Shown here one piece after another: positions 15,924 to 60,949 of a stretch of DNA of 64,000 nt (position 1 is the first letter of the stretch; each line of letters starts with the position of its first letter). The position numbers were made by a program, and so were the translations under genes. The DNA lies in the NCBI GenBank assembly GCA_002269645.1, contig NIVC01000787.1, positions 1 to 64,000 on the forward strand. Reading direction: 5' to 3'. The notes under the pieces are model-generated. The model was not told the DNA's origin and did not search any database. It saw only the letters and a program-made list of their open reading frames with translations. This stretch comes from Macrostomum lignano (lineage: Eukaryota).

Positions 15924-18900
15924 TCACATTTTCGACTCAGCTGTAGACGCATTGCCAGATCCTTGATTCGTCACGTGACCATTGCCGTTTGCGTGCTCTG
16001 CGACCTCCTGTAGCTTCTGTTGCTCATGTAGCTGCTGATGCTCTGCTTCTGGGTCACCAGTCAGAGCCGACTCAACCCGCCTGAGCGCTGCTATGCCTGT
16101 CAGCCAGACATGGGATCGGCAAAACCCTGCCATAGTTACCAACGCCAGGACAAAAGCGCTGCACAATAGCCAACCGATGCAGAAGCACTGGATGCTGAGC
16201 GGTTGCAGCAGCAGACTGCACGGCAGGCGCACAGCGTCGGCATAAATCTGGTGCAAGCTGCCGCATCGAACTACGGAGCTGAGGAATTTGGCGCCGATGT
16301 GTTTGCCAATCTGCACTGACCCAGCCAGAGTGCCCAGCATGATGTGCCGCTTGTACTCCGAGGCCGCCGTCTGCACCCACAGAGTTCGGTTCAACAGGTA
16401 CACATCCACAGCCTGCGGTGGAGTGACGCAGTTTTTCTTAGAATGCGTTTTGATTTGTGAATCTGGTTTAAATACTCGTTCGAGCTGGGATACAATGGAC
16501 TATGAAATTCTGAGGACCCGGTGGAATGCTGAGGACCCGATGAACTGCTGAGGACCCGATGGAACGCTGAAGACCCGATTGGAAGCTCTGAGGACCCGAT
16601 GGAATCCTGAGGACCCGGTGGAATGCTCTGAGGATCCGATAGAATTCTGAGGACCCGATGGAATATTTCTGAGGACCCAATGGAATGATTAGGGACCGAT
16701 GGAATGCTTAGGGACCGATGGAATGCTTAGGGACCGATGGAATGCTTAGGGACCGATGGAATGCTCTGAGGATCCGATGGAATGCCGAGATTCTAGTCGT
16801 TGTCACTGCTAATACAAGTGTATACATGATACTGCTGAATGCTTCATACCTGATTTCGCACAATCACTTCGTCAATGACAGCGTTGACGTCTTTCTCAGC
16901 TTCCAGAGTCAGCATCATGCCGCCGACCTCGTTAGCGTAGCGTCGCAAGTAGTCGACCGCAAGCAGACTACGGGCTGCGTTTCGAGAATTCATCGTCGAC
17001 AACTGCTTGACGCTGCTCTCCGATTCTGGCAGCAGTTTGTCCACGCGCTCGTTGAGTCGGCTGAACTCATTTAGCTGGACCTCGAGCTCCGCTGCCGAGA
17101 CTGCTCGAGGCTTGAGCCTTCGTTGTAACTCGACGAAATCGGTGGACGTGTAGGTGCGAAAGAACGGCTTGAGGTTCTGCAGGTCCTCCGTTACTTTTTC
17201 GTCGCGCAGCTGGTCCAAGTTGACTGCCTGCATCTCTCTGATCAGAATAGCGAGTCCTTTGGCCTGGAACTGCTTAGTCTCGACTGTCTTATCCAACACT
17301 GCTTCATCGATGTATCGATCGGCTCCCAATGCAGTTAGCAGTGGCAGATTGCTTTTGCACGAGTGCTGCAAGGCGTACTGAATCGAACCCACAGCCGTGA
17401 TGGGGATTTCAGTGGCGTTCGGATCGCCAGCGCTCCGGGCGCGCAGCTCCGCAAGAACGCCGTTCACTTCCGGCACGAGAAATTCATCCGCCTTGGACTG
17501 ATTCCCCGACGACTGGGTGTCCCACAGGTAGCGACAGGCCTCGGCCTGCACAAAAGCAGTTGCTGTAGACATTGCCGCGTTGAGAACGATGGCCAGTCCA
17601 ATAAGTATGAAGCTGCATAAGTACAGGGTGCCAACAAAGTATTTGGTCCGGGAACCAGTTTTTATTGACTTAAGCACGAACGGGGTAACCCCAGTCGCCA
17701 GGGCAATCGTCGAGATGAAGAACAGCATCAGAATAAACAGGGTGATACCGAATCTTGCACTCTCTGGACCGGATGTCCAGCTGGTGTACGAGTTGGAGAA
17801 CTGTTTCCGGAGTTCACCAAGACCTTCTCTACCTGCGCTAAGCTGAACTTCCATCTCGATTAGCTGCGACTCAATCGAATCGATGAGGAAGGCTGTGGAG
17901 TTCAGCTCCCGGTCGAAGACGGCGCTAATGTTGGCGTTCATCTCGTCTCCGACACGAAGCTTTTGTCGGCGAATCTCCTGCTGACGTGCTGGTGTGTTAC
18001 CGCTACCGTCCAGGGCGCCCACGAGCTGGTAGACGAGCTTCGTGATGTTCTTGGCGTGCGTCTCCAAGCTGCTTGACTGTCTCTTGTCGCTTGACGAAGA
18101 TGCGTTGACTGTTGTCCAGTCATTTCGAACTGCCTGCACCGCTAAAACGAGCTGCATTGCCGCCTGACTATGATTCGAGCACAGGTTGTCGGTACCGTTG
18201 TAGTACTTCCGGCAGGTGTCTTCGTAAGCAAAGAACTGCACATTTTTCAGATCACTCAGAGCCGACTGCAACATCTCCATGGCGATGCTGAGATTCTTTC
18301 CCGAATAGTAAAAATCGCTCATTCGACGAAGCAGCTCGTCGGAGACGGCCAACAGCTGGGCGGCTCCCGTCGACTGTTTGAAGGCGGTCTCGTACGCGAC
18401 CTGAGCTCGAGACTTGAGCTGGTCGGTGAGTCGCTGAGCCTCTAGAATCACCGGGGCTGCCTCAGAGCGAATCTGGTCGCCGAGACCGGCCATGAAGGCG
18501 TCCACCTTGCCCAGTAGGCGGTCCACGCTGCTCGACAGGCTGTCCTCCTTGTGCCCGTCAGACCCAGCTGTCAGGCTGTAGTGCAACCGGAAGTTCGCAG
18601 CCGAGGCCAGGATCAGCGGCATGAGAGTGACAATCAGCAGCAGCAGGCAGAGCACAGCCAGACTGCAGGACACTGACTTGGCCCGTCCCGACTCCCGAAT
18701 CTGCCTCCGGCGCAGTGCCAACATCGACGCGTACGATCCCGGCCTGCTGCGCTCCTCCCTGTCGCGTCGGACAGTCCGCCAGGCGCAGCCGAAGATGCAC
18801 AGACCGAACAGCAGCATTAGAAGCGAGCTGACGATCGCCAGGATCAGCATTGCCAGGCTGCCTCCGGCGAATACGCGGCCTGGCAGGTCAGCCAGCAGGG

Positions 18901-19039
18901 CATCGAGCGCGGCCCCTGTTCCATTGTTCGTCAGCGTCTGCAGCAGGCGTTGCTCGCCAATCAGACGGAACAGACCGCCGTCGAAGGGCCGACCGCTGTT
19001 GAATAAAGCGATGGCAGATTCGTGGACTGCGGTCTCCAT
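15924..19039 (-). CDS. PROM: Prominin (CD133) family pentaspan membrane glycoprotein; N-terminal exon(s) not located
   Basis: Exons 19039-16850 (CAG|GTATGA donor) and 16412-15924 join in phase 0, giving ~892 aa. Hydrophobic segments in the prominin arrangement, AEACRYL after the TM pair, and a C-terminal CGSLHQIYADAVRLPCSLLLQPL followed by a TM. The ATG is immediately preceded by a CAG acceptor. Symbol is at family level only. Confidence 0.8.
16515..16785. repeat. 20-21 bp minisatellite (gaggacccgatggaatgctct) in the prominin intron
   Basis: About 12 tandem units. Confidence 0.85.
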
Positions 19040-32471: not shown

Positions 32472-34912
32472 TTAAACAGGCGTAGCGGCTGACGTTCCAG
32501 CTGAGTTTGCAGTAGCAGTAGCCATCGAGCTGCCGCCGGCGCCGCCGTCAGCGCCTCGACAGGTCAGACTGACAGAGCGGACAAAGTGAAAATCGGCTGT
32601 GCGGCAGTGCGGACACGCCAGCGGCTGCGAGAATTGGGAAAACGCCGTCGGCAGATCGCCGGGCTCCGTGACCAGCGGTCGCCGGCAGTGGCTGCACAGA
32701 AGTCGCTCCGGGCAGCAGGGCGAACAGGCGAGTACGTCGAATGTGTAAATTCCGCCAACTAGCAGGTGCGAGCCGTCCCAGGTGTGCTGACAGTAGCGGC
32801 AGCGACTATGCAACTGCGGCTGTCTGGTACGGCAGGCGCAGTGCAGACAGACGGCGTGCAGGAAGCCCTTTCCGCACGCGGGACCGTCCGAGCTCCGGTG
32901 CCGCACCGGGCTGAGAAAGAACGTCCCGTCAATGAGCGGGAAATGATCGTACACGGGCATCTGATGGCCGCAAAGGACGCAGGGAACTTGCGGACTCCTA
33001 CAAGCAGTCAGCGTGGTGAGCACCAACGACTTAAGCTCGTCATTCTCGGTCGAGCTGTCGTCCTCAGTGACGATGTGGAATTTGTTCTGCTTGCTCCTCG
33101 GCAGAACTTTCAAGCTGTCGAAGTTGTCCAGCCGGCGGCGGAATATGTTGCCGCGGTTGCGCAGCTGGTGCTGCAGGGCCGGCTCGGCGGGCGGCGGCTG
33201 TTGCGAGTAGACCAAGGAGGTGAATGGCACCGTTGAAGTCTCCGATCTTGTCGGGCTCAGACTGAACGCGGCGCCGAAGCCGCCGTGGCTTGACGAATTG
33301 CTGAGGTTCCGCAGTCTTTTATTAAGCATGTCTGTCGGACTGTTGTAGGAGCCGACGCCGCCGCCACCGCTGCTGCCCATGAGGTAGTAGCCATTGTTGG
33401 ACCCAGCTGTCTGCTGTTGCCGTCTACGGCCGATCAACTGCGGCTGCGAGGCGGCGGTCGCAGATCCCGGATGCGAATGATCTCTCACCAGCTGGCCCTT
33501 GCCGCAGGGGCAACGGAGGAGCTTCTGTTGATCGCCACGAACCGACTGAGTTGGCGACATTGCAGATGCAGACTTTTGATGACTGCCGCTGGCGGCTGAG
33601 CGCTCCCACCGGTTGAGACAGTCCAGATGGGCCCACAGAACTGCATTCGGTATTCAAAGTATTCTTGAATTATTCTTCTATTCTTCTATTCAAAGTATTC
33701 TGCCCATTTCGCAGTCACATACAAGCGAGCTATGCAATACTGTACGCAGGCACGCACTCATGCACACGCTCACACAGGGTGTACAGCGTCCAGCTGACTG
33801 TCTAATCGTCAGGCATGTACACTCTCTGCAGATGTACGTGTTGCCTGTGGGTAATCTACGGTATGGATGAGTTGCCTGTGGGTAATCTACGCTGTGGATG
33901 AGTTGTCTATGGGTAATCTACGATGTGGATGAGTTGTCTATGGGTAATCTACGCTGTGGATAAGTTGTCTATGGGTAATCTACGCTGTGGATAAGTTGTC
34001 TATGGGTAATCTACGATGTGTATAAGTTGTCTATGGGTAATCTACGCTGTGGATGAGTTGTCTATGGGTAATCTACGATGTGGATAAGTTGTCTATGGGT
34101 AATCTACGATGTGGATGAGTTGTCTATGGGTAATCTAGGCTGTGGATGAGTTGTCTATGGGTAATCTACGCTGAGGATAAGTTGTCTATGGGTAATCTAC
34201 GCTGTGGATGAGTTGTCTATGGGTAGTCTACGCTGTGGATGAGTTGTCTATGGGTAATCTACGCTGTGGATGAGTTGTCTATGGGTAATCTACGCTGAGG
34301 ATAAGTTGTCCATGGGTAATCTACGCTGTGGATGAGTTGTCTATGGGTAATCTACGCTGTGGATGAGTTGTCTATGGGTAATCTACGCTGTGGATGAGTT
34401 GTCTATGGGTAGTCTACGCTGTGGATGAGTTGTCTATGGGTAGTCTACGCTGTGGATGAGTTGTCTATGGGTAATCTACGCTGTGGATGAGTTGTCTATG
34501 GGTAATCTAAGCTGTGGATGAGTTGTCTATGGGTAATCTACGTCTAGTACCTAGTAGCGTAGAAATCAAGCCAATTGTATATATCAGAGAAGAGCTCACC
34601 CTGACCACAGGAGTGCCCCGAGCACACCAGTTTAACAGCGTCTTGACACTCCTCCGGATCCGAGATGACGGCCGAATTCTGTCTGGTCTGATTCGGCGGC
34701 AGCAGATGGGAATCGACGGAGTGCAGACAGCAGGTTACGCTGCTCAGTTGATGATTATGATAATGATGATGCTGGTTGTGATGATGATTGGTGTTGAGAC
34801 CGTTCTCGACCGCCCTCTGAGCATCCTGCAGCTTGCCAGCTGGCCTGAATCGATAGGCTGTCATTCCCCCAGAGCCGCTGCTGTTGCTGCGAGGCTGCAG
34901 GGAGGTGGACAT
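32472..34912 (-). CDS. HECA: Headcase protein homolog, ~493 aa
   Basis: Exons 34912-34600 and 33640-32472 join in phase 1. Motifs DAVKLVCSGHSC, AHLDCLNRWE, CPCGKGQLVRD, CVLCGHQMPVYDHFPLIDGTFFLSP, CRYCQHTWDGSHLLVGGIYTFDVLACSPCC, CPHCRTADFHFV. Confidence 0.92.
33715..34545. repeat. Dispersed block copy C (33715-33830) followed by a 31-bp minisatellite (tctacgctgtggatgagttgtctatgggtaa) in the headcase intron
   Basis: The reverse complement of 33715-33830 matches copies A and B; about 22 tandem units follow. Confidence 0.85.
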
Positions 34913-35516
34913 TGCCTCGGTGACTTTTGAGTAAAACAATCAGTGACTGAAGTATGGTATGCCGTTGAAAACAAAGTAGCAGAGCCCGCTAAACGGCCGT
35001 AGACTTTCGGACGCGGCTTTTGTAAAAAAACAGAGAAAGAGAGAGAGACCGAAATGTGGTGCAGTTGTAGTTAGCCTGTGTGTGGCTCTTCGTCGAGGGG
35101 GTGTGGGCGAAGCGACAGAGGGAGTGAGAGAGAGAGAGAGGGGCATTGTAGACAAGACAGAGTATTAAGAGCTCTAACCCGCCTGGCTCTCTCGCCTTCA
35201 GTGCACATTTGCATTCAGTACAGCTGGCCTTGCCCACTGTCTTCATGAACTTTTAGTGCGCGCACTGGACGCATGTGCATGGGGCTGTCGTTGCTGTAGT
35301 GAGGGGAGAGAAATGACGAGTGGAAGAGAAAAACAGCTCGTAGAGACGCAAAAAATAGCCAAAAATGTACACTGTGTGTACGCAGACACAGCAGCGCTGT
35401 GTTCAATCCCGACTTCCTCGCTTCCTCCAACGATTGCACTAAAAGCTACTTCGGTACACGCAATAAGGAAGGCGCGTGACAATTCATAAGGACAGTTGAA
35501 CTAGTGGGGATTCATA

Positions 35517-36165
<649 letters not shown>

Positions 36166-36769
36166 CAGACGCCCTATGACATGACAAAGAAGATGCAACT
36201 GAAAATTACTTCAAAGGCAAAGCCAACTGAAAGCCAAATGCCCCAATTACAGGGGACTCGCGGCAAGAGGTCCCAAGTCCTCATTATCCAGGTCTGCCAT
36301 CAAAAACTTCAGCTCATAATTTCAGGTTGTCTGCCGGTGGCCCGCACCATGTACTTGTCTATCAGGTTGACTGTATGATGAGAAAATTGCAGAGTCCCTG
36401 CTGAGCTCTCTGCTGCTCTCTGTCTGATCCGACTGAAGAAGTTTGAACGAAACGGTGCACTATATGAGGTCAATTGAGACAGCTGTGAAGCTGGATAATT
36501 TCTCAATCTTTCTCTCCATCTGTCTTCTAAGCCTGTCATTCTAGAGTTAGTTGCTTCTCAGGAATTTTCTAGTGACTTTCGGAGTCCTTTGCGGCTGAAT
36601 TTCAGGTTTATAATTTTTTTCTGAGAAAGTACCCGGCAAAAATTTTAATCGTTGCGGTGAATAAATTCAAAACACGCATTTAGTCTACTCTTAGTAGCAC
36701 GAGTACAAACTGTTTAGCTCTATGTGTTATAATTAGCTGTCATGGATGGGAAAAAATTAAAATTAAGTA

Positions 36770-37400
36770 AAACTGGCGCCACTCGTGACAAATCTGGCGC
36801 CTCTTGAAATTAATCTGGCGTCATTAGGATAAATCTGGCGCCATTTGAGAGGAATCTAGCGCCACTTGGAATAAATTTCATGGAATCAATCTGGCGCCAC
36901 ATGGAATCAATCTGGCGCCACATGGAATCAATCTGGCGCCACTTGGGATAAATCTGGCGCCACTTGAGATAAATCTGGCGCCACTTGAGATAAATCTGGC
37001 GCTACCCGAGATAAATCTGGCGCCACATGGAATAAACCTGGCACCACTCGAGATAAATCTGGCGCCACATGAAATAAATCTGGCGCCGCATGGAATAAAT
37101 CTGCCGCCACTTGGGATAAATCTGGCGCCACTTGAGATAAATCTGGCGCCACTCGAGATAAATCTGGCGCCATTTGGGACGAATCTGGTACCACATAAAA
37201 TAAATCTGGCGCCACATGGAATAAATCTGGAACCACATGAAATAAATCTGGCGCCACATGTAATAAAACTGGCGCCAGTCGAGATAAATCTGGCGCCACA
37301 TGAAATAAATCTGGCTTGTGGCGCCATATTTGGTACGACTCTGGCGCCATATGGAATAAATTTGAAATGAATCTGGCGCCACTTAGGATAAACATGGCGC
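36770..37400. repeat. 21-22 bp minisatellite with palindromic core (ataaatcTGGCGCCActtgag and variants)
   Basis: About 28 units; the variable part is only 5-7 nt. Confidence 0.9.
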
Positions 37401-38124
37401 CTTTCATATACATGTAGGTTCAGTTGACATTAAAACAGCGTTGCAAAAGCAGAAGTACTACAATATATACAGTACCTGATAAACTGTGGAACAGGTTGAC
37501 TTCAGGTAAATTATAAAAATGCAGTCAATAAGGTTTGCCCAAGGAAAACTACCTGATCCATATGAGATATACCTCCATACCACCATATACATGCAGGTAT
37601 CTAAGCCCTTCTCTAATAAGCAGAGACGAAAAGCAGTGTTCTCTACAGAACACTAAATTTTATAGAGGGTTATGCAAGCCCCAAACAAACAATTTATGAA
37701 ATGAATTGTCCATTTTTTCTCCATCGGCTCCGAGCGAGCTCGTCTGCCTTGAGTTGAGTTTTGTGTAAATCTTAAATAGAGCTTGCTATGTCAAACGCTT
37801 GCTCATTTAGAGGCAAACCTCTCTTGCTGTTGGAGAGTATAAAACCGTTAGAGCAGACTCATAGCCAGGGAGAGAGTGGCTGCAGTATTCGGCTGTTTTT
37901 ATATCTCTTTCTCTTATCTCTGTTTGAGCACCGAATACTATTAAGAGATTGAAATAAACACTCTGCTCATTTGTTTTAAGTTTTTGATTATAAGGGTTTT
38001 ATTATATATGGCATTAGACCATTAGACATGCCGGAGCTTGAAAGAAGCTCGACCACTGTTGCTGCTGCTGCTGGCTGCTCAACTAACGGAAGAGGAGAGG
38101 AGTTGATCAGACGATCCATCACCA

Positions 38125-39780
38125 AGATGGACTGGTGAGTTGCTGAGTAAATGGAGGTGAGTTGCTGAGTGAATGGACTGGTGAGTTGCTGAGTAAATGG
38201 AGGTGAGTTGCTGAGTGAATGGAGGTGAGTTGCTGAGTGAATGGACTGGTGAGTTGCTGAGTGAATGGAGGTGAGTTGCTGAGTGAATGGACTGGTGAGT
38301 TGCTGAGTGAATGGACTGGTGAGTTGCTGAGTGAATGGAGGTGAGTTGCTGAGTGAATGGACTGGTGAGTTGCTGAGTGAATGGACTGGTGAGTTGCTGA
38401 GTGAATGGACTGGTGAGTTGCTGAGTAAATGGAGGTGAGTTGCTGAGTGAATGGAGGTGAGTTGCTGAGTGAATGGACTGGTGAGTTGCTGAGTGAATGG
38501 ACTGGTGAGTTGCTGAGTGAATGGACTGGTGAGTTGCTGAGTGAATGGAGGTGAGTTGCTGAGTTAATGGACTGGTGAGTTGCTGAGTGAATGGAGGTTA
38601 GTTGCTGAGTGAATGGACTGGTGAGTTGCTGAGTGAATGGACTGGTGAGTTGCTGAGTGAATGGACTGGTGAGTTGCTGAGTGAATGGACTGGTGAGTTG
38701 CTGAGTGAATGGAGGTGAGTTGCTGAGTGAATGGAGGTGAGTTGCTGAGTGAATGGAGGTGAGTTGCTGAGTGAATGGAGGTGAGTTGCTGAGTGAATGG
38801 AGGTGAGTTGCTGAGTGAATGGAGGTGAGTTGCTGAGTGAATGGAGGTGAGTTGCTGAGTGAATGGAGGTGAGTTGCTGAGTGAATGGACTGGTGAGTTG
38901 CTGAGTGAATGGAGGTGAGTTGCTGAGTGAATGGACTGGTGAGTTGCTGAGTGAATAGAGGTGAGTTGCTGAGTGAATGGAGGTGAGTTGCTGAGTGAAT
39001 GGAGGTGAGTTGCTGAGTGAATGGAGGTGAGTTGCTGAGTGAATGGAGGTGAGTTGCTGAGTGAATGGACTGGTGAGTTGCTGAGTGAATGGAGGTGAGT
39101 TGCTGAGTGAATGGAGGTGAGTTGCTGAGTGAATGGAGGTGAGTTGCTGAGTGAATGGACTGGTGAGTTGCTGAGTGAATGGACTGGTGAGTTGCTGAGT
39201 GAATGGAGGTTAGTTGCTGAGTGAATGGACTGGTGAGTTGCTGAGTGAATGGACTGGTGAGTTGCTGAGTGAATGGAGGTGAGTTGCTGAGTGAATGGAC
39301 TGGTGAGTTGCTGAGTGAATGGACTGGTGAGTTGCTGAGTGAATGGACTGGTGAGTTGCTGAGTGAATGGAGGTGAGTTGCTGAGTGAATGGACTGGTGA
39401 GTTGCTGAGTGAATGGAGGTTAGTTGCTGAGTGAATGGAGGTGAGTTGCTGAGTGAATGGACTGATGAGTTGCTGAGTGAATGGAGGTGAGTTGCTGAGT
39501 GAATGGAGGTGAGTTGCTGAGTGAATGGAGGTGAGTTGCTGAGTGAATGGACTGGTGAGTTGCTGAGTGAATGGAGGTTAGTTGCTGAGTGAATGGACTG
39601 GTGAGTTGCTGAGTGAATGGACTGGTGAGTTGCTGAGTGAATGGAGGTGAGTTGCTGAGTGAATGGACTGGTGAGTTGCTGAGTGAATGGACTGGTGAGT
39701 TGCTGAGTGAATGGAGGTTAGTTGCTGAGTGAATGGAGGTGAGTTGCTGAGTGGATGATGATGATTGCTGAGTAAATGAT
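38125..39780. repeat. 22/24-bp two-variant minisatellite (gtgagttgctgagtgaatgga-g / -ctg), ~1.65 kb
   Basis: About 70 tandem units of two interspersed variants. Confidence 0.95.
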
Positions 39781-40082
39781 GGCAATCGAGACGCCAAGTA
39801 GATATTGAAGAGATATTGAGTGGATAGTTGTGAGATACTGAGCGGATAGCAGTGACGATGCTGAGAAGATGGTGCTTAGATGCTGAGCTGAGCATCAAAA
39901 CCTTAGATTACACTTTTGTATTCTGTGGCGGTATTGGCCAGCGCTAGCGCATACAACCCTGGATAAATCACAACGCACGGAAGTTTTTGCACTGAGACGT
40001 CAAGAAGCCTCACCTATGAGGGCAGCTCAGCGTAATTAAGTTTAATAAAAAATGATGGAGACGGACTCACAACTGACGGTTG

Positions 40083-47969: not shown

Positions 47970-48463
47970 GAAGAGTTGATAATAGAATAAGGCACTGTAG
48001 TAGTTATAAAAAAATAATTGTAGGAAAGATGTATATTGAAAAGAACAGTTTTAAATTTGAACTTTGCTTTGTTGTTTAGGTTACTTTATTAGCTAGCTTA
48101 ATCGACTGATTGATTCTTGAAGCCTGGTGGTATCTCAAAGGATTAGGAAATATGCAACTCTAACGTTAATTTTTGCTTAGGGGTTGTGTGTGGTGGTTTC
48201 CTGGATTTAGTGAACCTTTAAAAAGGTAAAGAAACGTATTTTCCATCAAAAACTCGAATAAGCTAAAGCCGAGAAAATCAGAATTCACAGTTATATTTTC
48301 TAACTTGCAAAACAGTTATAACTACATAGGATTTATTACGTCTCGAAAGTCAAAACGTAGTTTTTTATACTGTTTGTCTTTCCATGGATCTCTATTTTAA
48401 AAAACCGAAACTTTTTGGCAATATATTTTTAGCCTGCCTGATTTGCCAAGCACTGCACTCACA

Positions 48464-49357
48464 ATGGACTCTACGTTGGGCAGTATGACCGTGCAGGCCC
48501 TCAAAGATGCCTTACGCGAGAAGGCCTTACCTACAAGTGGCAATAAAGAAGAGCTGATAGGCCGCCTGCTCGCTGCAAGCCAGGCCGAACGAGCTCCCAG
48601 CGATGACGACGGTGACGACGACCAGGACGAGGATGACGTGCGCCGGGCTGCGCCAGCGGAGGAGGCCACAGAAGCGCAGATTCGGCAGACTCAGAAGAGG
48701 ATCGAGCTGCTTAAACTGCAGAAGGCTGAGGCCCAGTTGCGGGATGAAGTGCAGTCGATCCGCAGTGGCGCCGCATCGCCCCCGCTGGCCAGAGGAGGGC
48801 CGGACATCTACGCCAGCCTGTTCGGGGACCAGAGCCGACAACCGAGGTTTGATTCGGCCGGAGCCCAGCGGCCCCCATCAGCGCTGCTCATCCCGGAATT
48901 TCTGGACGAGAAGCAGCAGTCGGGAGGATGGCTGACACAGGAACGTGGTCGCCTGACTCTGAAAGGCGCAACGCCGAGCCTGTCCGGAGTCAACTTCGGC
49001 CAGTGGGTGGCTGCCAACGCGCGGATCATGCAGCGACTGCTGGAGACCGGCCAGCTGGTGGCGCCCGGTACGGATGGACAGCCCGACTGCAAGAGTCTGA
49101 ACGCCTACCTCAACTTTAACATCCACATCGGCGAGCTGATCGACGCTGGCTACGACTGGAAGGTGGTGCTCCAGTACGACCAGGACATGAGGCTGCAGCA
49201 GCACTCGCGACAGCGCGACTGGGACAGCCCCGATCTGAACCTCATCATCAAGCATATGACGGCGCCCAAAAACCTGCGAGCTGCTGGCCCAGTCGCGGTC
49301 GGTCAAGGAGTCCAGGGTCACCGTAGCAGGGGCCAGCTAAAACGGCGACTTATCTGA
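48464..49357 (+). CDS. SAP-domain + DIRS/Ngaro gag(ORF1)-like protein, C-terminally truncated (~297 aa)
   Basis: SAP motif TVQALKDALREKALPTSGNKEELIGRL. The downstream GQWVAANARIM...YLNFNIHIGEL...WKVVLQYDQDMR...W pattern resembles ORF1 of tyrosine-recombinase retrotransposons. The ORF runs into a LINE RT fragment at ~49340. Confidence 0.6.
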   Translation: MDSTLGSMTVQALKDALREKALPTSGNKEELIGRLLAASQAERAPSDDDGDDDQDEDDVRRAAPAEEATEAQIRQTQKRIELLKLQKAEAQLRDEVQSIRSGAASPPLARGGPDIYASLFGDQSRQPRFDSAGAQRPPSALLIPEFLDEKQQSGGWLTQERGRLTLKGATPSLSGVNFGQWVAANARIMQRLLETGQLVAPGTDGQPDCKSLNAYLNFNIHIGELIDAGYDWKVVLQYDQDMRLQQHSRQRDWDSPDLNLIIKHMTAPKNLRAAGPVAVGQGVQGHRSRGQLKRRLI

Positions 49358-51169
49358 GCCCATCCCAATCAACAAAGGTGTACTTCAAGGTAACCCACTA
49401 TCTACCGTTCTCTTTGAGATCTATATCAATGACTTAGTTGAATACCTTGAAACCTCTACTTATCGAATTTTTTTCGTCGCACCCCCTTATCCACATACTA
49501 CTCTTCGCAGATGATCAAGCCATACTAAGCAAAAACAAAACTGACCTCCAACACATGTTCCGCACAATGGAAACCTACTGTAGACAGAACTACCTCAAAA
49601 TAAATGCCAGCAAAACAAAATACATGCAAGCCTGCAAGGGTAAAAACAAGCAAATGCAAAACGACACCGAAATTCTTTACGAAATGCAACAGATAGAAGA
49701 AGTAAATGAATTTAAATACCTGGGAATCATCTTTGAACCCAATAATAGTTTTAAAAAATGCATTGCTTATCAGATGAAACAAGGTAACTCCGCCATGTTT
49801 TCACTGCTACACAAAGTAAAAGACACCACGCTGGATATTATACTTATCAGTAGACTATTTAATTCTTTGGTCACACCAGTTATAACGTATGGTTGTGAAA
49901 TCTGGGGACCTCTAGCAACCTGTACTGAACTCAAGAACATCGACAAAATCCAAACAAATTTCTACAAATACCTCCTTAGCCTACCTAAAAGTACCTGCAA
50001 CTCTGTTTTATACGCAGAACTTAATTTAACACCTATCTCACTTACCATCTCGAACTTTTTTCTTACATACTGGCTCAAAATCAAACATAAAAAACTGAAT
50101 AGTACCACTATAGGCATCTTCGAATCAAACAACTGCCCAAACAACCCATGGAAAACCAACATCACTAAAAAACTACAAAACCTTGGTTTATCTCACCTGC
50201 TTAATTTACAAACATCGGACCCTGGTGACAGCTACAACAAAGATAAAACAACAATGACCACACAACTACTCATCTCCTGGGAGCGTGAACTCTTCAAAAA
50301 AATAGAAAACCACGCGAAAGTCATGCATTACAAAAATTGCTTCATCTATAAGAATATTTTCAAGCCTAACTTAAAAAACTACTTTCCCAGTATTTTTAGA
50401 AATAAAAAACTCCTAGAAATTCTGCTTAAGCTTAAAACTGAGTTCTTACCAAGCAAATACACCCAAGAAAAATGCAAACTTTGTGGCAGAGATTCAGGCA
50501 ATAATATCTTACACTATACAACTGAATGTGTCGGTATACTAGATGTCAGGAAAAAATACTTTAACCAAAGCCACCTGAGCACAAGACACTTTTACAGTTT
50601 AGGCTATGCTACAAACGAAAACAAAAATAAAAAAGATTTGCTAGCTATTGAGAAGATCTATAAACTCATAGCAAATCTCCCTCCTTAACCGACATGAAAA
50701 TTATAGAGAACACCATGTGTACCACGCTGTTGCTGACCGTCTTACACCAATTGAATCCCTGGTTACCTTGATACTCTACTTGCTATTCCCTCTTGCTACT
50801 ATGCATCTCTTGCTATTAAGTCCCTACCCCGAGTAAAATCGAGTAAACAATACCGGTGCAATCCATCCCGTATTACGCGTTTATTTATGTAAAAATTATC
50901 TTTTTCTAATCGCGCCTTATTTTTATTTAAGCACTCTATTTTTGGTTATTTATTTCTTACATATTTGCTTCAAAAATACCCTTCATATTTAATGCCTAAT
51001 AATTGCCAGCAATCCTTTCATCTGATTTTTTTGTCTGATTAATACATATAAACTTATTTTTATCACCTACGAATTCAAGTGACACCATACTTGTCTTTTA
51101 ATCCCTTACTTAAATACTTTTTGCTTTGTTTGCCGTTAAAGATTTTTGAAGTTTCGTAGAAAAAAAAAA
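49340..51169 (+). mobile_element. 5'-truncated non-LTR retrotransposon (RT C-terminal half + zinc knuckle, AT-rich), 3' UTR and possible poly(A)
   Basis: NGDLSEPIPINKGVLQGNPLSTVLFEIYINDL (frameshift) LLFADD..., KINASKTKYM, FKYLGI, YGCEIWG, CKLC..H..TEC; stop at 50688; A10 run at 51160-51169 (the 3' end is tentative). Confidence 0.85.
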
Positions 51170-51229
51170 TTGGCGCCCTTTCAAATACTATATTATTGTA
51201 AAACTCGCCGCACAGATCCCATTCTATCG

Positions 51230-51839
51230 AAATAATATTAATATTAAATACACTGACATATACTGGCCAAACAGGCTTCTTGCCTGAGCCAAATTACTAC
51301 TACTACTATATGTACAGTGCATCCACTTCCACGTGCACTCTTCAATAGCTTGATTTCGAGCTACACCAGAGTGCAATCCTCTCGCGATGTTACTGCCTTC
51401 GTCTTTTCTAAGACCTGCAGTTCGTGAACGAAAATTGCTTGTTGGGCACCGTTCAAACGCCCTTGGTGCTTTTGATGCACTACTTAGAAATGCATAGCAG
51501 CTGCCCAAGTGTGGCGCGCGGTCTGCCACAATAAACCACAATAATTGCTAGGTTTTTGTAGCGATTTTTCGGAGCTTCATGTCGCGTTGCACCATCTCAT
51601 GCGACACATGAACTTAAAATTCGAAAAGGGACATAACCCCGTCCTAGAACTGCAACTGCTGCAGATTCTACATGTACTCCGTGTAGCGATGCTTTCTGTA
51701 ATATTCCACCGGCTCCCGGGCGAACTCGTACGCTCCACTCCAGCATTCCAGGTGAGCCATCAGGGCCAGACTGCGGACAAAGGAAAACTTCCCCGCCCCG
51801 ATTAGACCTTCGATCACGTAAGTTCGAGTCTGAGGCCAT
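51230..51839 (-). pseudogene. Deoxynucleoside kinase (dNK/TK2/dGK family) pseudogene, intronless
   Basis: Frame from 51820: YVIEGLIGAGKFSFVRSL (P-loop), FAREPVEYY, IVADRAP..CYAF, then a shifted frame VHQKHQGRLNG...DCTLV*LEI. Several in-frame stops; the ATG at 51839 is out of frame by one base. Confidence 0.75.
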
Positions 51840-52577
51840 TTGCTGAAATGAATAATTAGACGGAATCAGCTGCTTGGGGAAAATGTTGGAAAACCTCCTG
51901 CAACACTTGCTTCAGTTCCTCGAGATTTTGAGGACCGCAGACTATAAATTTCCTACTAAAAACAGTTAGGTTCAGGAATAGCCTCGGGAATTGCACTGAA
52001 GCCTGCAGAGGAGATTGTCATAAGGAAATTTTCCTTATCCATGCTTAAACAATACAGCAGCTCTCCAACTTCAGTGTAGTATAGTACCCGAAAACAGGGA
52101 CTCCAGGAGAAGAGTGCGGACAGATGAACCTAGGCTTCCACCATAAGTGCTTGTCTACACACGTACAGACTCGTATCCATGCAAACCGGCAATAGCTCGG
52201 CATAGCTCGTTTATGAAGTACGCGGGCACCTTACTGCTTGGATTTTAGATTTGGCACCAAAAATTGTTACTCGGTCTCGGTCTCGGTCTCGGCTCAAACT
52301 TGATCAGTACACAACTGGCATCGAAGGACGCCCAGGATAGAGTTTTGCCTCCCGCCCCGCAAAAAGTATAGCTTAGACTTTAACGAGCTCCACGACATGT
52401 TGCAGCAGTCTCTGAATGAGACAAGGAACAGGAAAACACATTTCTTGATTTCTTCTTTTTTAACTCAATGAGATGTTCTAGGCGTTTATTTGATTTGCAG
52501 CAGTCGATGCACTCGAATCGTCCGGCACCCAGCTGGCAGTCCCGGTCGGCGCGGGCACTGCAGCTCGCGGGCCATAG

Positions 52578-52623
52578 CAGGGCCAACTAAAACTACCCTG
52601 GGTCAGGGTTTAAGTTGTCCCTG
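52578..52623. mobile_element. 46-bp minimal P-superfamily-like element (CAGGG termini)
   Basis: cagggccaactaaaac...gtttaagttgtccctg; flanks ggccatag/gaccatag (8-bp TSD, 7/8); ends nearly identical to the TIR tips of the 57956-60949 element. Confidence 0.7.
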
Positions 52624-53019
52624 GACCATAGTTGTCCCTCTTGACCGGCCGCGTAGACCCTCCGTTTGGCGGGAGACTATGCGGAACATCTGCATGTCGT
52701 ATACACGCCTTCCATCAGCACGGCAGAGCGAAGGGTGAACAACACCTTCCACTTGTCGTTGGCGCGAGGCGGATTAAACAGGCTGCCTGGAAGGTTATAG
52801 ATGGTAGAGTCCCGACCAATTGAACAGCTCCGGCAGCTGAGCCTCGCAGAAGACCTTGCCGAAGAGAATCCAATCCAAGCCAATCCTAAACAAAGAACTT
52901 CACTTTCGATATAAGCTTAGATGATAAGGGAGATGCAGCGGAGAGGATACACTCCGAAAACTTCGATATCTATTTTCTTCCTGTCTTTATATACTATCAT
53001 CTAAAATTTAATTCAAACT

Positions 53020-53747
53020 ATGAGCGACCAGCTGAATGATTTTTCACGCGCTGCCAGTGCTCCAAACGACCCCAGGCGGGGTCTCTCACGTTCGCGAAAT
53101 GTGAATGAAGACCACGACGATTATTTCTACGAGTTTTCGGATATCGAATACTTAAACGACCTATGACGCATCCCAAGAGATCAACCGACGAGTAAAGTTT
53201 GGCGCACGCTTGATTAATTTTTACACGTAGGTTAACCTGATTAAAATAAAAACATGATCAACTCCTGTGACTACCCACCGCGGATGTCACCCATCCTGAA
53301 CTGCGCGGCGGACATGGACGCTTGGCGCCGTGGGCGTGGGCGTGGGCAAGGGCGCTGTGGAACAATGGCGCCGTGGGCGGCGGCAACCATGGACGTGAGG
53401 TTAGCGTTGGCGCTGGATCCGCCGAGGGTGCTCATAGACGATCGAGAGATGAACCTTCTGCCCGGAGCGAGGGAGCTATGGGCGATGGCAATCATCCATG
53501 GTACCCTGAGCCTTATCCATGCAGCGTCTCGCCTTTACGGCGTTCATCGCCCCTTGATTGGCGCGGGCATGGACGAATCCGTAGAAATGGTGAGACCTGG
53601 ACAATCGTCGCTGAGGAGCCCCTCTACGAATTCTGGTACCCGCTAATATGCCTGGACCGTCTATTCGGCGGGCAGCTGCTGATGATCCGTCTGAATCGGG
53701 CCTCGGCGAATGATAAGACATGCACCGTTCATGCACCAACTCAGTAA
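53020..53747 (+). CDS. Two short intronless orphan ORFs (53020-53166, 48 aa; 53254-~53747, apparently frameshifted)
   Basis: Both ATGs follow A-rich leaders (ttcaaactATG, aataaaaacATG); no family recognised. Confidence 0.3.
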
Positions 53748-53984
53748 AATCAAAATCACTGCTCTCAGCATTATAATCGATTTAAGTCCAGTAATGGCGT
53801 GTGTGTCTGCGCGCAAATACGAGCGTAAATAATAAATACTCTGTGCTACGATCAGACGAGATCAGAATACAAGCGTTCTTTACATTATTTGTGCAATAAC
53901 CATGTTTCTATCTAACGTAAAGCAAGCTTGGAGATCGTCTAGGTCTTACACTAGAACTATTGAGGGAATTTAGCCCTTGCCTGC

Positions 53985-57955: not shown

Positions 57956-60949
57956 CAGGGACAACTAAAACCCTCGGGACGCGAAACGAGCCAATTCATG
58001 GCATAAAATCTGAGGGGCTCGCTTAAAAGTATTGTTCTATGGCTTTTTCAAGTCTTCTCTGCTCTCTTCTCTTCTCTGCGGCCAGCAGTGAAGCTAAGCT
58101 GAACTATATCAAGAGAAGCATTTTTTATTCACTTGATGAAATGCCAAGAAAGTGCAGCGTATTTCCGTGCTCGTCAAATTACAACTCTGAAGCCGTTCGA
58201 ACACGGATATTTGCGTTTCCCAGAGATCCACAGGAGCGAGAGCGATGGAGAAAGGCGCTGCCAAATATTCTCCAGGTAAGAAACCAGATCATTTGCTGTC
58301 ATTTCTGCTGCATAATTCCGCTTCAATTCTGCATGCCAGTCTCGTCCAAACAACTTGAAACCCAAAATTTATTATTTTAGAGAGTGACTGACAATATGGG
58401 CGTGTGCGTAAAGCATTGGCCAAGCGATGCTCCAATGGTCAAGAAAAACTCTACCGAAAGGCCAATTAATCCTCCTTGAGTTCCTAGCTCGTGTTTTGTT
58501 CAGAACCAAGGTACGTAACTTAAAGATTGCTCAACACTTAGCGTCTATATCGATTTTGCCGCTCACAATTATCTTACTTTTATTTTTACTCTTATTTTAG
58601 ACCAGGACCGACAGGCCGAAAAGCGCGGTGTTCTTTCTGACGCGAGGTGCGGCGACATCGATGAGATGTACGCTTTTCAGCTGCTTGATTTTTTGCCGGC
58701 ATGGGTAAGTTTTTGAGCTGAGGTGAAAAATTCGGATGTCGTATCTCGACATGCACTGAACACAGCTATTCTGAACGAAGACGTTTACTTGTTTACGTTA
58801 GATAAAGATGGAGACTTGTCTATTCGAATTTTTGTCTCACCCAACTTTCTGATTCGTGCATTCAAACTGCATACACCGATTTCGGTTCGAGACTTGTTGG
58901 GATTTCAACCGACACTTAAGCGCTGGTCGCAACTGGATGCTGTTGTCGTGCGGTGCAAACATTCCGACGCCAATCCCCAACGTGAAGTCGAAGCGTTTGT
59001 TAGTAGAATCAGTGATGATATAGATTCTGACTCTGATTTGGATCCGTCGCTTCAGTTTTTGATTCGACAACTTAGCCTTACATTAGTAAATCGGAACAAT
59101 CGCCGCTATGATATTTCACTAGTGCGACAGTAAGCATTGCTCTACTTGATCAGTAGTTCGGCTTACTCTTACCTACGAAAGCTATTAACATTGCCTCATC
59201 CCCGAACGCTGCAGCTGCAACTAGCAGGTACAGGAGAAGTTGGCACAGAAACCGACGCAGCCGATGTGATCCAGTCAGTTTTTGCTAGTCTATCAGGAGC
59301 TCAGCGAAACTGCGTAATTATGTTTGACGAAATGTACATACAACCGTCCGTTCGATATCGATGCCGTCACCTTCTGGCTCGAGCCGTCGACGATCCGGAC
59401 CAGGTTGCTAGGACAATTTTGGCCATAATGGTAAAGCCATTACTTGGTAGAAAACCGTTTGTAGTCCGACTATTGCCGACATACATTTTGTCTGCGGAGT
59501 TTCTGCGAAAATGCGTCAGCCAATGTATTAAAGCAATTAACAACAACGGTGGCCGTGTCGTTGCTCTCGTCAGCGACAATCACCCTACCAACCGCAAGTG
59601 TTTTGCTTTATTTAGCGATGGAAGAGAGAAGCCATGGATTGGAACGGATGCTGCACAGGAGTCGGAATTCTTCATGCTGTTCGATTTCGTTCACATTATC
59701 AAATGCATTCGCAACAATTGGCAAATGGAAGCGAATGGAATTCTAAGCATTCAACCTCCTGGCGCTGACCCACGAATCAGCTACGTTCTGCTGGCTGACT
59801 TTCACAGTGATCCACTTGAGGCTGAGTTTGGCGTGTATCGCCAAATGAGCGGCGGCAACTACTATGTATCTGTGGAGCAAGTGCTGCTCAGTGCTCGACT
59901 CCGACGAATGAAATTATTCGCATCCCTTGAATTAGCAGACTACAATCACGATCGGAGCAAATGTTGCAATGAACAGCTGAATAAAATTGAACTGGCGACC
60001 ATTGATAATTGTGCTGCTAAATCAGAGGAGCTTTCCATTTCGGAGATGGCTTCGCTCTACTATATCGCAGGTAAGCTGGATATTAATTAAAATTTAATTC
60101 ACAACGAGGTTTTACACAATCTCATAAAAACAATTTAAACCGTGCTTAATTGGAAATTGACAGGTTATACAGCGACTAAAGAAGGCATCAAAGGAACAGA
60201 TTTGATATCAGAGACGAGCATTCCAGCCAGCGAATTCACTGAAGAGTTATCTCGCGGAAAGCTTTGTCATCCTCCACAATGGCTGTTGGACTTATCCTGT
60301 CTCTGCTACAGCAGTTTTATTCTGCACTCTCCTACGTGCGCAACTCGCGTGCAGAAGCTGTTTTATGTTATTAAGGACTTTTACTTTCCAACTAAGACAC
60401 AGTTCAGCATGGACAGTGTGTCCCGTCGGCTAGCCAACGTTTTTTTCAAAGGACTAGTAAGACGCTCGTCAAAACTTCCACCAATACCGACGACATCCCA
60501 TGTTAGAAAGCTTCGGAAGTTAGATGCTCAGTAGGTGAAGTTCCAGCGTTTCCTTTATGTACGAGCTACTGACTGTTTGTGTCGTCTTGCCCTTGGAGTT
60601 CCGTATTTGCTTCTATCTTCTTGCCGTTGGAGTTATATCTTTGCTTTCATCTTTTATCTTCTTGCCGTTGGAGTTATATCTTTGCTTTTATCTTTTATCT
60701 TCTTGCCGTTGGAGTTTTTTTGTTGATATGGCGGTTACTTTATTGTAAATACATTGTAATTATATCACTGGTTCCTATTCTTTAAATTAAATACTCGATA
60801 TTGCCTCGCTTTACTATTTAATCTAACCGTTAATGCCTGATAGCAGAGAAGACTTGAAAAAGCCATAGAACAATACTTTTAGGCGAGCCCCTCAGATTTT
60901 TTGCCATGAATTGGCTCGTTTCGCGTCCCGAGGGTTTTAGTTGTCCCTG
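57956..60949 (+). mobile_element. P-superfamily (THAP9-like) DNA transposon, internally deleted and inactivated, ~107-bp TIRs
   Basis: TIR cagggacaactaaaaccctcgggacgcgaaacgagcc...cttctct at both ends; direct flank gtacgaaca duplicated. THAP MPRKCSVFPC...RW...CVKHW split by introns; transposase motifs FDEMYI, VSDNHPTNRK, FDFVHIIKCIRNNW, FHSDPLEAEFG.YRQMSGGNY. Premature stops at ~58478 and ~59131; ~41-bp repeats at 60590-60720. Confidence 0.92.

Follow-up and report, generated by a model that had tools for sequence, protein, structure and literature searches.

Adintovirus sequences have been reported in all eumetazoan phyla (Starrett et al. 2021, PMC8502044). Genes for a phospholipase A2 (PLA2) and a pX-like protein are typical of the virion modules of Alpha adintoviruses, and genes for a TATA-binding-protein-like (TBP-like) protein and a dUTPase have been reported in the related midsize (MELD) viruses (PMC8502044). 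A kinase of the deoxynucleoside kinase (dNK) family is not mentioned among the accessory genes listed for adintoviruses (PMC8502044). The DNA considered here, referred to as the window, is the stretch of 64,000 nucleotides that opens contig NIVC01000787.1 of the flatworm Macrostomum lignano. On its minus strand, positions 51,364-52,916 probably represent the truncated, non-functional left-end block of an integrated double-stranded DNA (dsDNA) virus of the Maverick/Polinton type, similar to Alpha adintoviruses. The block comprises the remnants of three genes: a gene of unassigned function (gene A), a TBP-like gene and a dNK gene.

An earlier reading of the window, hereafter the original prediction, had marked 51,200-53,800 as the fossil of a DNA virus or virus-like element with a decayed dNK gene. 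The virus-like nature of the region is supported by three colinear, decayed genes, whose relatives lie in compact, same-strand blocks that also encode a protein-primed family-B DNA polymerase (pPolB). Fuller copies of the element occur elsewhere in the M. lignano genome (loci L001 to L003), and the remnants in the window keep the gene order and strand of L001 and L003. Because the three remnants are colinear, they would be a fragment of one element copy. The fragment measures about 1.5 kb, and all three of its genes are heavily decayed.

Gene remnants in the window

No frame stays open for long on the minus strand at 51.2-53.0 kb. The longest ATG-started open reading frames (ORFs) in 51,200-53,000 are no longer than those obtained from dinucleotide shuffles. 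Claims about genes in this region must therefore rest on homology. The positions of the features are given in Table 1.

All peptide strings quoted in the original prediction are present on the minus strand, at about 51.2-53.0 kb. Taken by itself, the window frame with the P-loop gives a marginal match to the Pfam dNK family (PF01712, E = 0.18) and no match in a PDB search. Its sole match in a collection of 5.8 billion proteins is P0001 (A0A1I8G0Y7, E = 1.4e-36), a "DNK domain-containing protein" of M. lignano. A tblastn search of the window with P0001 aligns 93 residues at 78% identity (E = 2e-40), with an extra 12-residue piece in a different frame; the last 85 residues of P0001 (120-204) have no counterpart anywhere in the window. 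A hidden Markov model (HMM) of three relatives of P0001 (P0002 to P0004, with P0001 left out) matches the window frame with E = 4e-21, covering positions 1-121 of a profile of about 225, and positions beyond about 160 have no match in the window. It is through this clade HMM, not directly through Pfam, that the match to the dNK family profile is obtained. By these homologies, the predicted dNK pseudogene is real.

Two frameshifts and four to five in-frame stops distinguish the window copy from P0001 and its clade, and it has no open reading frame. Its P-loop (GxxxxGK[ST]) is not intact: the glycines and the lysine are kept, and the next residue is Phe, where the relatives have Ser or Thr. Also missing is the C-terminal ~45%, which contains the Arg-rich LID motif. 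The ATG equivalent to the initial Met of P0001 lies 16 nt past the stop of the upstream decayed ORF, in agreement with the predicted distance of less than 20 bp.

That upstream frame, the second decayed ORF of the original prediction, was compared with an HMM built from the genes upstream of dNK in loci L001, L003 and L004; the targets were all 2,844 open stretches in the six frames of the window. The best match in the window (E = 0.0034) is the stretch whose stop directly precedes dNK, and the second-best lies about 300 bp farther upstream. Once the stops are masked, three pieces, each in a different frame, align colinearly to the profile (29-74, 88-103 and 140-179). In Smith-Waterman comparisons, the C-terminal piece reaches z = 10.7 against L004 and the N-terminal piece z = 5.3 against L003; in neither case did any of 1000 shuffles score equally. 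On account of the two leading HMM ranks and these pairwise scores, the ORF is identified as a decayed TBP-like gene. It contains at least three frameshifts, at least two in-frame stops and a short simple repeat.

Gene A, which has no Pfam match, is the gene before the TBP-like one in L001 and L003. An HMM of its best-conserved block, made from these two loci, finds its top window match (E = 0.021) in the third broken ORF of the original prediction, at the expected place and on the expected strand. The pairwise comparison of this remnant with L001 gives z = 7.2, and a second piece in a different frame gives z = 5.2 against L003. At least one frameshift and one stop are present, and the 5' part is undetectable. 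HMMs of the other two conserved blocks (1 and 2) have no match at the expected window position; the best window match of block 1, near 5.8 kb, was rejected as a chance alignment of 10 residues. The 3' part of the third ORF is retained as a gene A remnant, with modest support that is weaker than for the dNK and TBP-like pseudogenes; the rest of that ORF finds no support.

The outer third of the predicted interval has no support as a part of the element; nothing in it beyond about 52,916 resembles L001 to L005. The two short divergent ORFs noted there do exist on the plus strand, but they have no Pfam match and no similarity to these loci. The 130-aa length of the longer one is reached in 24 of 300 dinucleotide shuffles (8%). 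The DNA around this ORF is richer in GC and has several overlapping open frames; an exact look-up of the ORF returned no record. In the whole window, no remnant of a PolB, capsid, ATPase, integrase, dUTPase or PLA2 gene was found, and tblastx of the relatives' loci against it recovered only the dNK N-terminus. Around the fragment, there is no terminal inverted repeat, target-site duplication or tRNA gene.

Table 1. Features of the window, with positions counted from its first nucleotide
Feature	Position	Strand	Basis or remark
dNK-like pseudogene	51,364-51,839	-	N-terminal ~55% only; P0001 match, clade HMM match
TBP-like (TATA-binding-protein fold) pseudogene	51,856-52,372	-	HMM of relatives' upstream genes; pairwise z
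Gene A remnant (function unassigned in relatives)	52,680-52,916	-	HMM top match; pairwise z
Rest of the predicted interval, including ORFs 53,020-53,166 and 53,254-53,646 (both plus strand)	52,917-53,800		Neither genes nor element membership supported
5'-truncated, AT-rich non-LTR (long terminal repeat) retrotransposon (reverse transcriptase (RT) tail and 3' region, poly-A end)	49,340-51,172	+	Pfam RVT_1
304-aa ORF with N-terminal SAP domain	48,443-49,357	+	E = 2e-9; in GC-rich DNA
P-element/THAP9-like transposase ORF	59,137-60,090	+	TNP-like RNase H N-terminal domain, E = 6e-11; P-element helix-turn-helix match weak
731-aa ORF, ATG-started, longest of the window	16,844-19,039	-	No Pfam match
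16-bp satellite, ~21 copies	54,565-54,907		Matches contig NIVC01001668.1 (L002 5,165-5,745) at ~88-90%
Four satellite arrays: 31-bp x17, (ATAG)n x164, 21-bp x21, 22/46-bp G-rich x72	34,000-39,800		
Headcase exon	32.5-33.6 kb		
Vta1 exon	42.9-43.7 kb		

The gene block in related loci

The related loci are L001 (NIVC01002529.1), L002 (NIVC01001668.1) and L003 (NIVC01000362.1) of M. lignano, and L004/L005 on Logan contigs. The M. lignano loci were read over 20.8 kb each, ending about 10.8 kb after the dNK start. The genes lie on one strand in the order gene A, TBP-like, dNK, endonuclease-VII/PolB, dUTPase, PLA2, putative A32-like ATPase and pX-like. In every readable locus (L001, L002, L003 and L004/L005), dNK stands between the TBP-like gene and a gene with Endonuclease_7 and DNA_pol_B_2 domains on the same strand. 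The TBP-like genes score 29.1 bits (L003) and 31.5 bits (L001) against Pfam TBP, whose cut-off is 22.9.

The gene downstream of dNK encodes 1,269-1,482 aa, with Endonuclease_7 directly before DNA_pol_B_2, the protein-primed type of polymerase (L001 11,963-15,772; L002 11,098-15,546; L004 2,295-4,232). In L001 and L002, the match to PF03175 has E = 1e-20 to 4e-20; the ~600-670 N-terminal residues of the polymerase have no Pfam match. It is followed in L001 to L003 by a dUTPase, a PLA2, an ORF with Walker motifs, an ORF of 318-330 aa, a pX-like basic protein and an ORF of 223 aa. The PLA2 gene is of the parvovirus VP1 type and scores 35-37 bits with PF08398 (Phospholip_A2_4) in L001 and L002, above the cut-off. 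The ATPase-like ORF matches Pox_A32 weakly (E = 0.006-0.02, below the cut-off), and both Walker motifs (A and B) are visible in it and conserved between the L001 and L002 copies. The Adeno_PX match is also weak (21-22 bits, below the cut-off) and falls on an ORF separate from PLA2. The conserved 318-330-aa ORF has no Pfam or PDB sequence match, a search for proteins homologous to the 223-aa ORF found nothing, and profiles of the ATPase-like ORF, the 318-aa ORF and PolB retrieved nothing meaningful from PDB.

L001 and L003 are colinear at the protein level over about 12 kb, starting about 1.7 kb upstream of dNK, and L002 and L003 share 99.8% identity over 9 kb, from within the TBP-like gene onward. 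All three M. lignano copies are incomplete or broken in the part read. Gene A and the first half of the TBP-like gene are missing from L002, in which most ORFs are open; the L003 polymerase is split over three ORFs, and gene A of L001 has a frame change. A large host gene with introns borders L002, and the contigs measure 164-653 kb (L002 253 kb, L003 653 kb). The long contigs and this host neighbour argue that the relatives are integrated.

The reading frames of the relatives differ in detail. In L002 (9,494-10,804) and L003 (9,425-10,804), the TBP-like and dNK genes form one continuous ORF with no stop between them, and the NCBI dNK gene model there splices out 117 bp in frame. In L001 and L004, dNK is one uninterrupted ORF. 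L004 and L005, obtained in two independent sequencing runs, match each other at 100% identity over 3,857 bp and carry open TBP-like, dNK and polymerase-start genes.

The kinase clade

P0001 is considered a genuine member of the dNK family because it matches Pfam dNK at E = 4e-15 and its best PDB matches are insect dNK, dGK and dCK. In a HMMER scan of 1.84 billion representatives with P0001 as query, only three close relatives were found: P0002 (M. lignano PAA57108.1, E = 6e-27), P0003 (M. lignano PAA65279.1/PAA84796.1, E = 5e-26) and P0004 (from two Logan assemblies, E = 4e-18). The best match outside this clade is a mite dNK at E = 8e-11. By this sharp drop, the clade is tight and centred on Macrostomum. 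The Pfam dNK matches of its members range from E = 4e-15 to 5e-24. The profile of the four proteins finds Drosophila dNK (E = 3e-18), human dCK (8e-17) and dGK (3e-14) in PDB, and the matches to Drosophila dNK and human dCK mark the clade as a divergent offshoot of the animal-type dNK family. Judged by protein divergence, the lineage of the window and P0001 is set apart from the lineages of L001, L002/L003 and L004 by about 55-60%.

P0001 lacks about 50 residues near the E/D-R-S-like motif, which all its relatives have and of which the window copy keeps a part. Its gene model probably skips a damaged stretch, and the locus of P0001 may itself be a pseudogene; an exact look-up of this locus returned no record. 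The next-nearest dNK relatives after the mite enzyme, P0006 and P0007, are distant. They are encoded on L006 (Logan SRR30564012) and L007 (Logan SRR25638219), which are AT-rich, intronless and gene-dense, carry genes for AP endonuclease 2, PP2C and BTB proteins, and look like giant-virus DNA.

Weighing of the alternatives

The block could consist of pseudogenised host genes, namely a duplicated or retro-copied host dNK with host neighbours, and no mobile or viral element at all. The genome of M. lignano is rich in duplicated DNA, the clade profile is nearest to cellular animal enzymes, and the next-best representative is the mite dNK. However, in all readable relatives dNK has a protein-primed PolB as neighbour within a compact, virus-like block, and the window keeps the element's order of three genes. 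This conserved synteny makes a host dNK pseudogene unlikely. A processed host pseudogene, which the original prediction had named as the finding that would speak against a virus, would be a lone retro-copy with a poly-A tract and without conserved neighbours. Here, two conserved neighbour genes are kept and no poly-A follows the 3' side of dNK; the one nearby belongs to a plus-strand retrotransposon. An origin from host genes is therefore rated as improbable.

A kinase paired with a dUTPase also brings large dsDNA viruses to mind, as both are common accessory genes of such viruses, and the distant relatives P0006 and P0007 come from giant-virus-like contigs. The original prediction had thought of a herpes-, irido-, nudi- or pox-like virus. 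The close relatives point elsewhere: their PF03175 polymerase, parvovirus-type PLA2, pX-like protein and putative A32-like ATPase make up the gene set of Mavericks, Polintons and adintoviruses (PMC8502044), and neither the window nor L001 to L005 shows a hallmark gene of herpes-, irido-, nudi- or pox-like viruses. Descent from a large dsDNA virus is thus very improbable. The fragment may also not be the residue of an integration at this place but a piece carried in by another repeat, as part of a composite unit or a segmental duplication. Just 1.5 kb is left, amid transposon debris and satellites (49.3-51.2, 54.6 and 59 kb), and neither an element end nor a target-site duplication is visible. 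Yet neither the fragment nor its flanks occur a second time in the window, and only proximity connects the fragment to the neighbouring retrotransposon, so that carriage by another repeat is unlikely.

Several observations weigh against assigning the fragment to a Maverick/adintovirus-like element. The lineage of the window and P0001 has not been seen in a full element; the loci read belong to other lineages. Among the genes that the original prediction proposed to look for in other copies, PolB and a weakly matching A32-like ATPase are present in the relatives; a capsid gene, an integrase gene or a terminal inverted repeat was not seen up to about 10.8 kb after the dNK start. Since the loci end there, the relatives' membership in the family rests on pPolB, PLA2 and the weak ATPase and pX matches. 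For gene A, the HMM of another block gives an equally strong chance match elsewhere in the window. In IMG/VR, neither the dNK clade nor the 318-aa ORF nor PolB found a relative, and the dNK clade also found none in JGI metagenomes.

Predicted biology and significance

As far as domains allow prediction, the parent element would have replicated by protein priming with its endonuclease-VII/pPolB protein. The dNK and dUTPase may have raised and cleaned the supply of dNTPs for this replication, and the TBP-like protein may have aided transcription of the element's genes. PLA2, the pX-like protein and the A32-like ATPase would have served entry and genome packaging. The fragment would then be what was left after deletion or rearrangement of an old integration, followed by neutral drift.

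The fragment is functionless today, and its value lies in pointing to the element family. The Macrostomum genome appears to hold several diverged Maverick/adintovirus-like lineages that carry a salvage pair of dNK and dUTPase together with a TBP-like gene. This also calls for caution in annotation, as models of "DNK domain-containing proteins" in M. lignano proteomes are genes of the element, in part decayed, instead of salvage enzymes of the host. A bolder proposal is that the window fragment and P0001 represent a fourth lineage of a flatworm-borne, adintovirus/Maverick-like group with an unusual module of TBP-like, dNK, endonuclease-VII-pPolB and dUTPase genes, some members of which may recently have been active in M. 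lignano. Recent activity is suggested by the 99.8% identity over 9 kb, the open ORFs of L002 and the identical contigs with three open genes from two runs. The proposal as a whole is tentative and somewhat doubtful. If it is true, free-living flatworms would gain their first DNA-virus lineage, and the group would be the first among adintovirus-like ones to possess a nucleoside kinase.

Genomic surroundings

The window is eukaryotic, as seen from its Headcase and Vta1 exons. The flatworm host guessed in the original prediction is confirmed by P0001, the nearest protein, which is from M. lignano, and by the 16-bp satellite, shared at about 89% with a contig of this species. The nearest neighbour of the fragment is the non-LTR retrotransposon, whose ORF at 49,438-50,688 matches RVT_1 at E = 4e-10; the RT frame extends upstream to about 49,340. 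Its poly-A (51,163-51,172) and the end of the dNK remnant are about 190 bp apart. A target-site duplication of the retrotransposon was not found, and nothing ties it to the break of the element.

The SAP-domain ORF is cut at its end by this retrotransposon and has no exact record in the gene index. It is possibly a gag-like gene from a different mobile element; a suspected link with L003 was rejected. Both in the window and in L002, the 16-bp satellite is found a few kb upstream of the element with dNK, in equal relative orientation. It was considered as a part of the element and rejected as a coincidence; L001 and L003 do not have it. The strong GC skew at 38-40 kb is due to the 22/46-bp G-rich satellite.

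Comparison with known viruses and elements

The kinases of the clade share the fold family of the animal deoxynucleoside kinases (Drosophila dNK, human dCK, dGK and TK2; PF01712), and the match to the Drosophila enzyme is nearly full length. Like these, the intact relatives retain the P-loop, the E/D-R-S-like motif and the Arg-rich LID motif. Unlike these, the clade is long-branched, Macrostomum-centred and element-borne, with about 30-45% identity to the cellular enzymes, and in the window copy, which is broken, the LID region is missing. The pairing of the kinase with a dUTPase and its presumed salvage role would resemble the dNK/TK accessory genes of large DNA viruses. In contrast to those viruses, the carrier is a midsize pPolB element, and the herpesvirus TK belongs to a different Pfam family, which finds no match here.

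Compared with the systems introduced at the outset, the relatives share with Mavericks/Polintons, in particular Alpha adintoviruses, the protein-primed family-B polymerase, the parvovirus-type PLA2 and, by weak matches, the adenovirus pX-like basic protein and a putative A32/IVa2-like ATPase. As in Mavericks and adintoviruses, their genes are compact, lie on one strand and are integrated in an animal genome, and the accessory dUTPase and TBP-like genes are shared with MELD viruses. Several features differ. The relatives carry a dNK-family kinase, unlike the adintoviruses described in PMC8502044, and their polymerase has an endonuclease-VII domain before PolB, with no OTU domain found by Pfam. 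PLA2 and the pX-like domain are on separate ORFs, unlike in Alpha adintoviruses, and the DNA read shows none of the integrase, capsid gene or terminal repeats of Mavericks and adintoviruses. Within a literature coverage that is incomplete, no published description of such elements in Macrostomum and no published dNK in adintovirus-like elements were found. The kinase, the endonuclease-VII-polymerase fusion without a detected OTU domain and the flatworm host may therefore be new in this family. On balance, the gene set of the relatives appears to be that of Mavericks/Polintons, and more precisely Alpha-adintovirus-like. Decayed insertions of Maverick/adintovirus-like elements are already known across animals. 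The fragment in the window, unlike a full element a broken piece of three genes only, is another such insertion.

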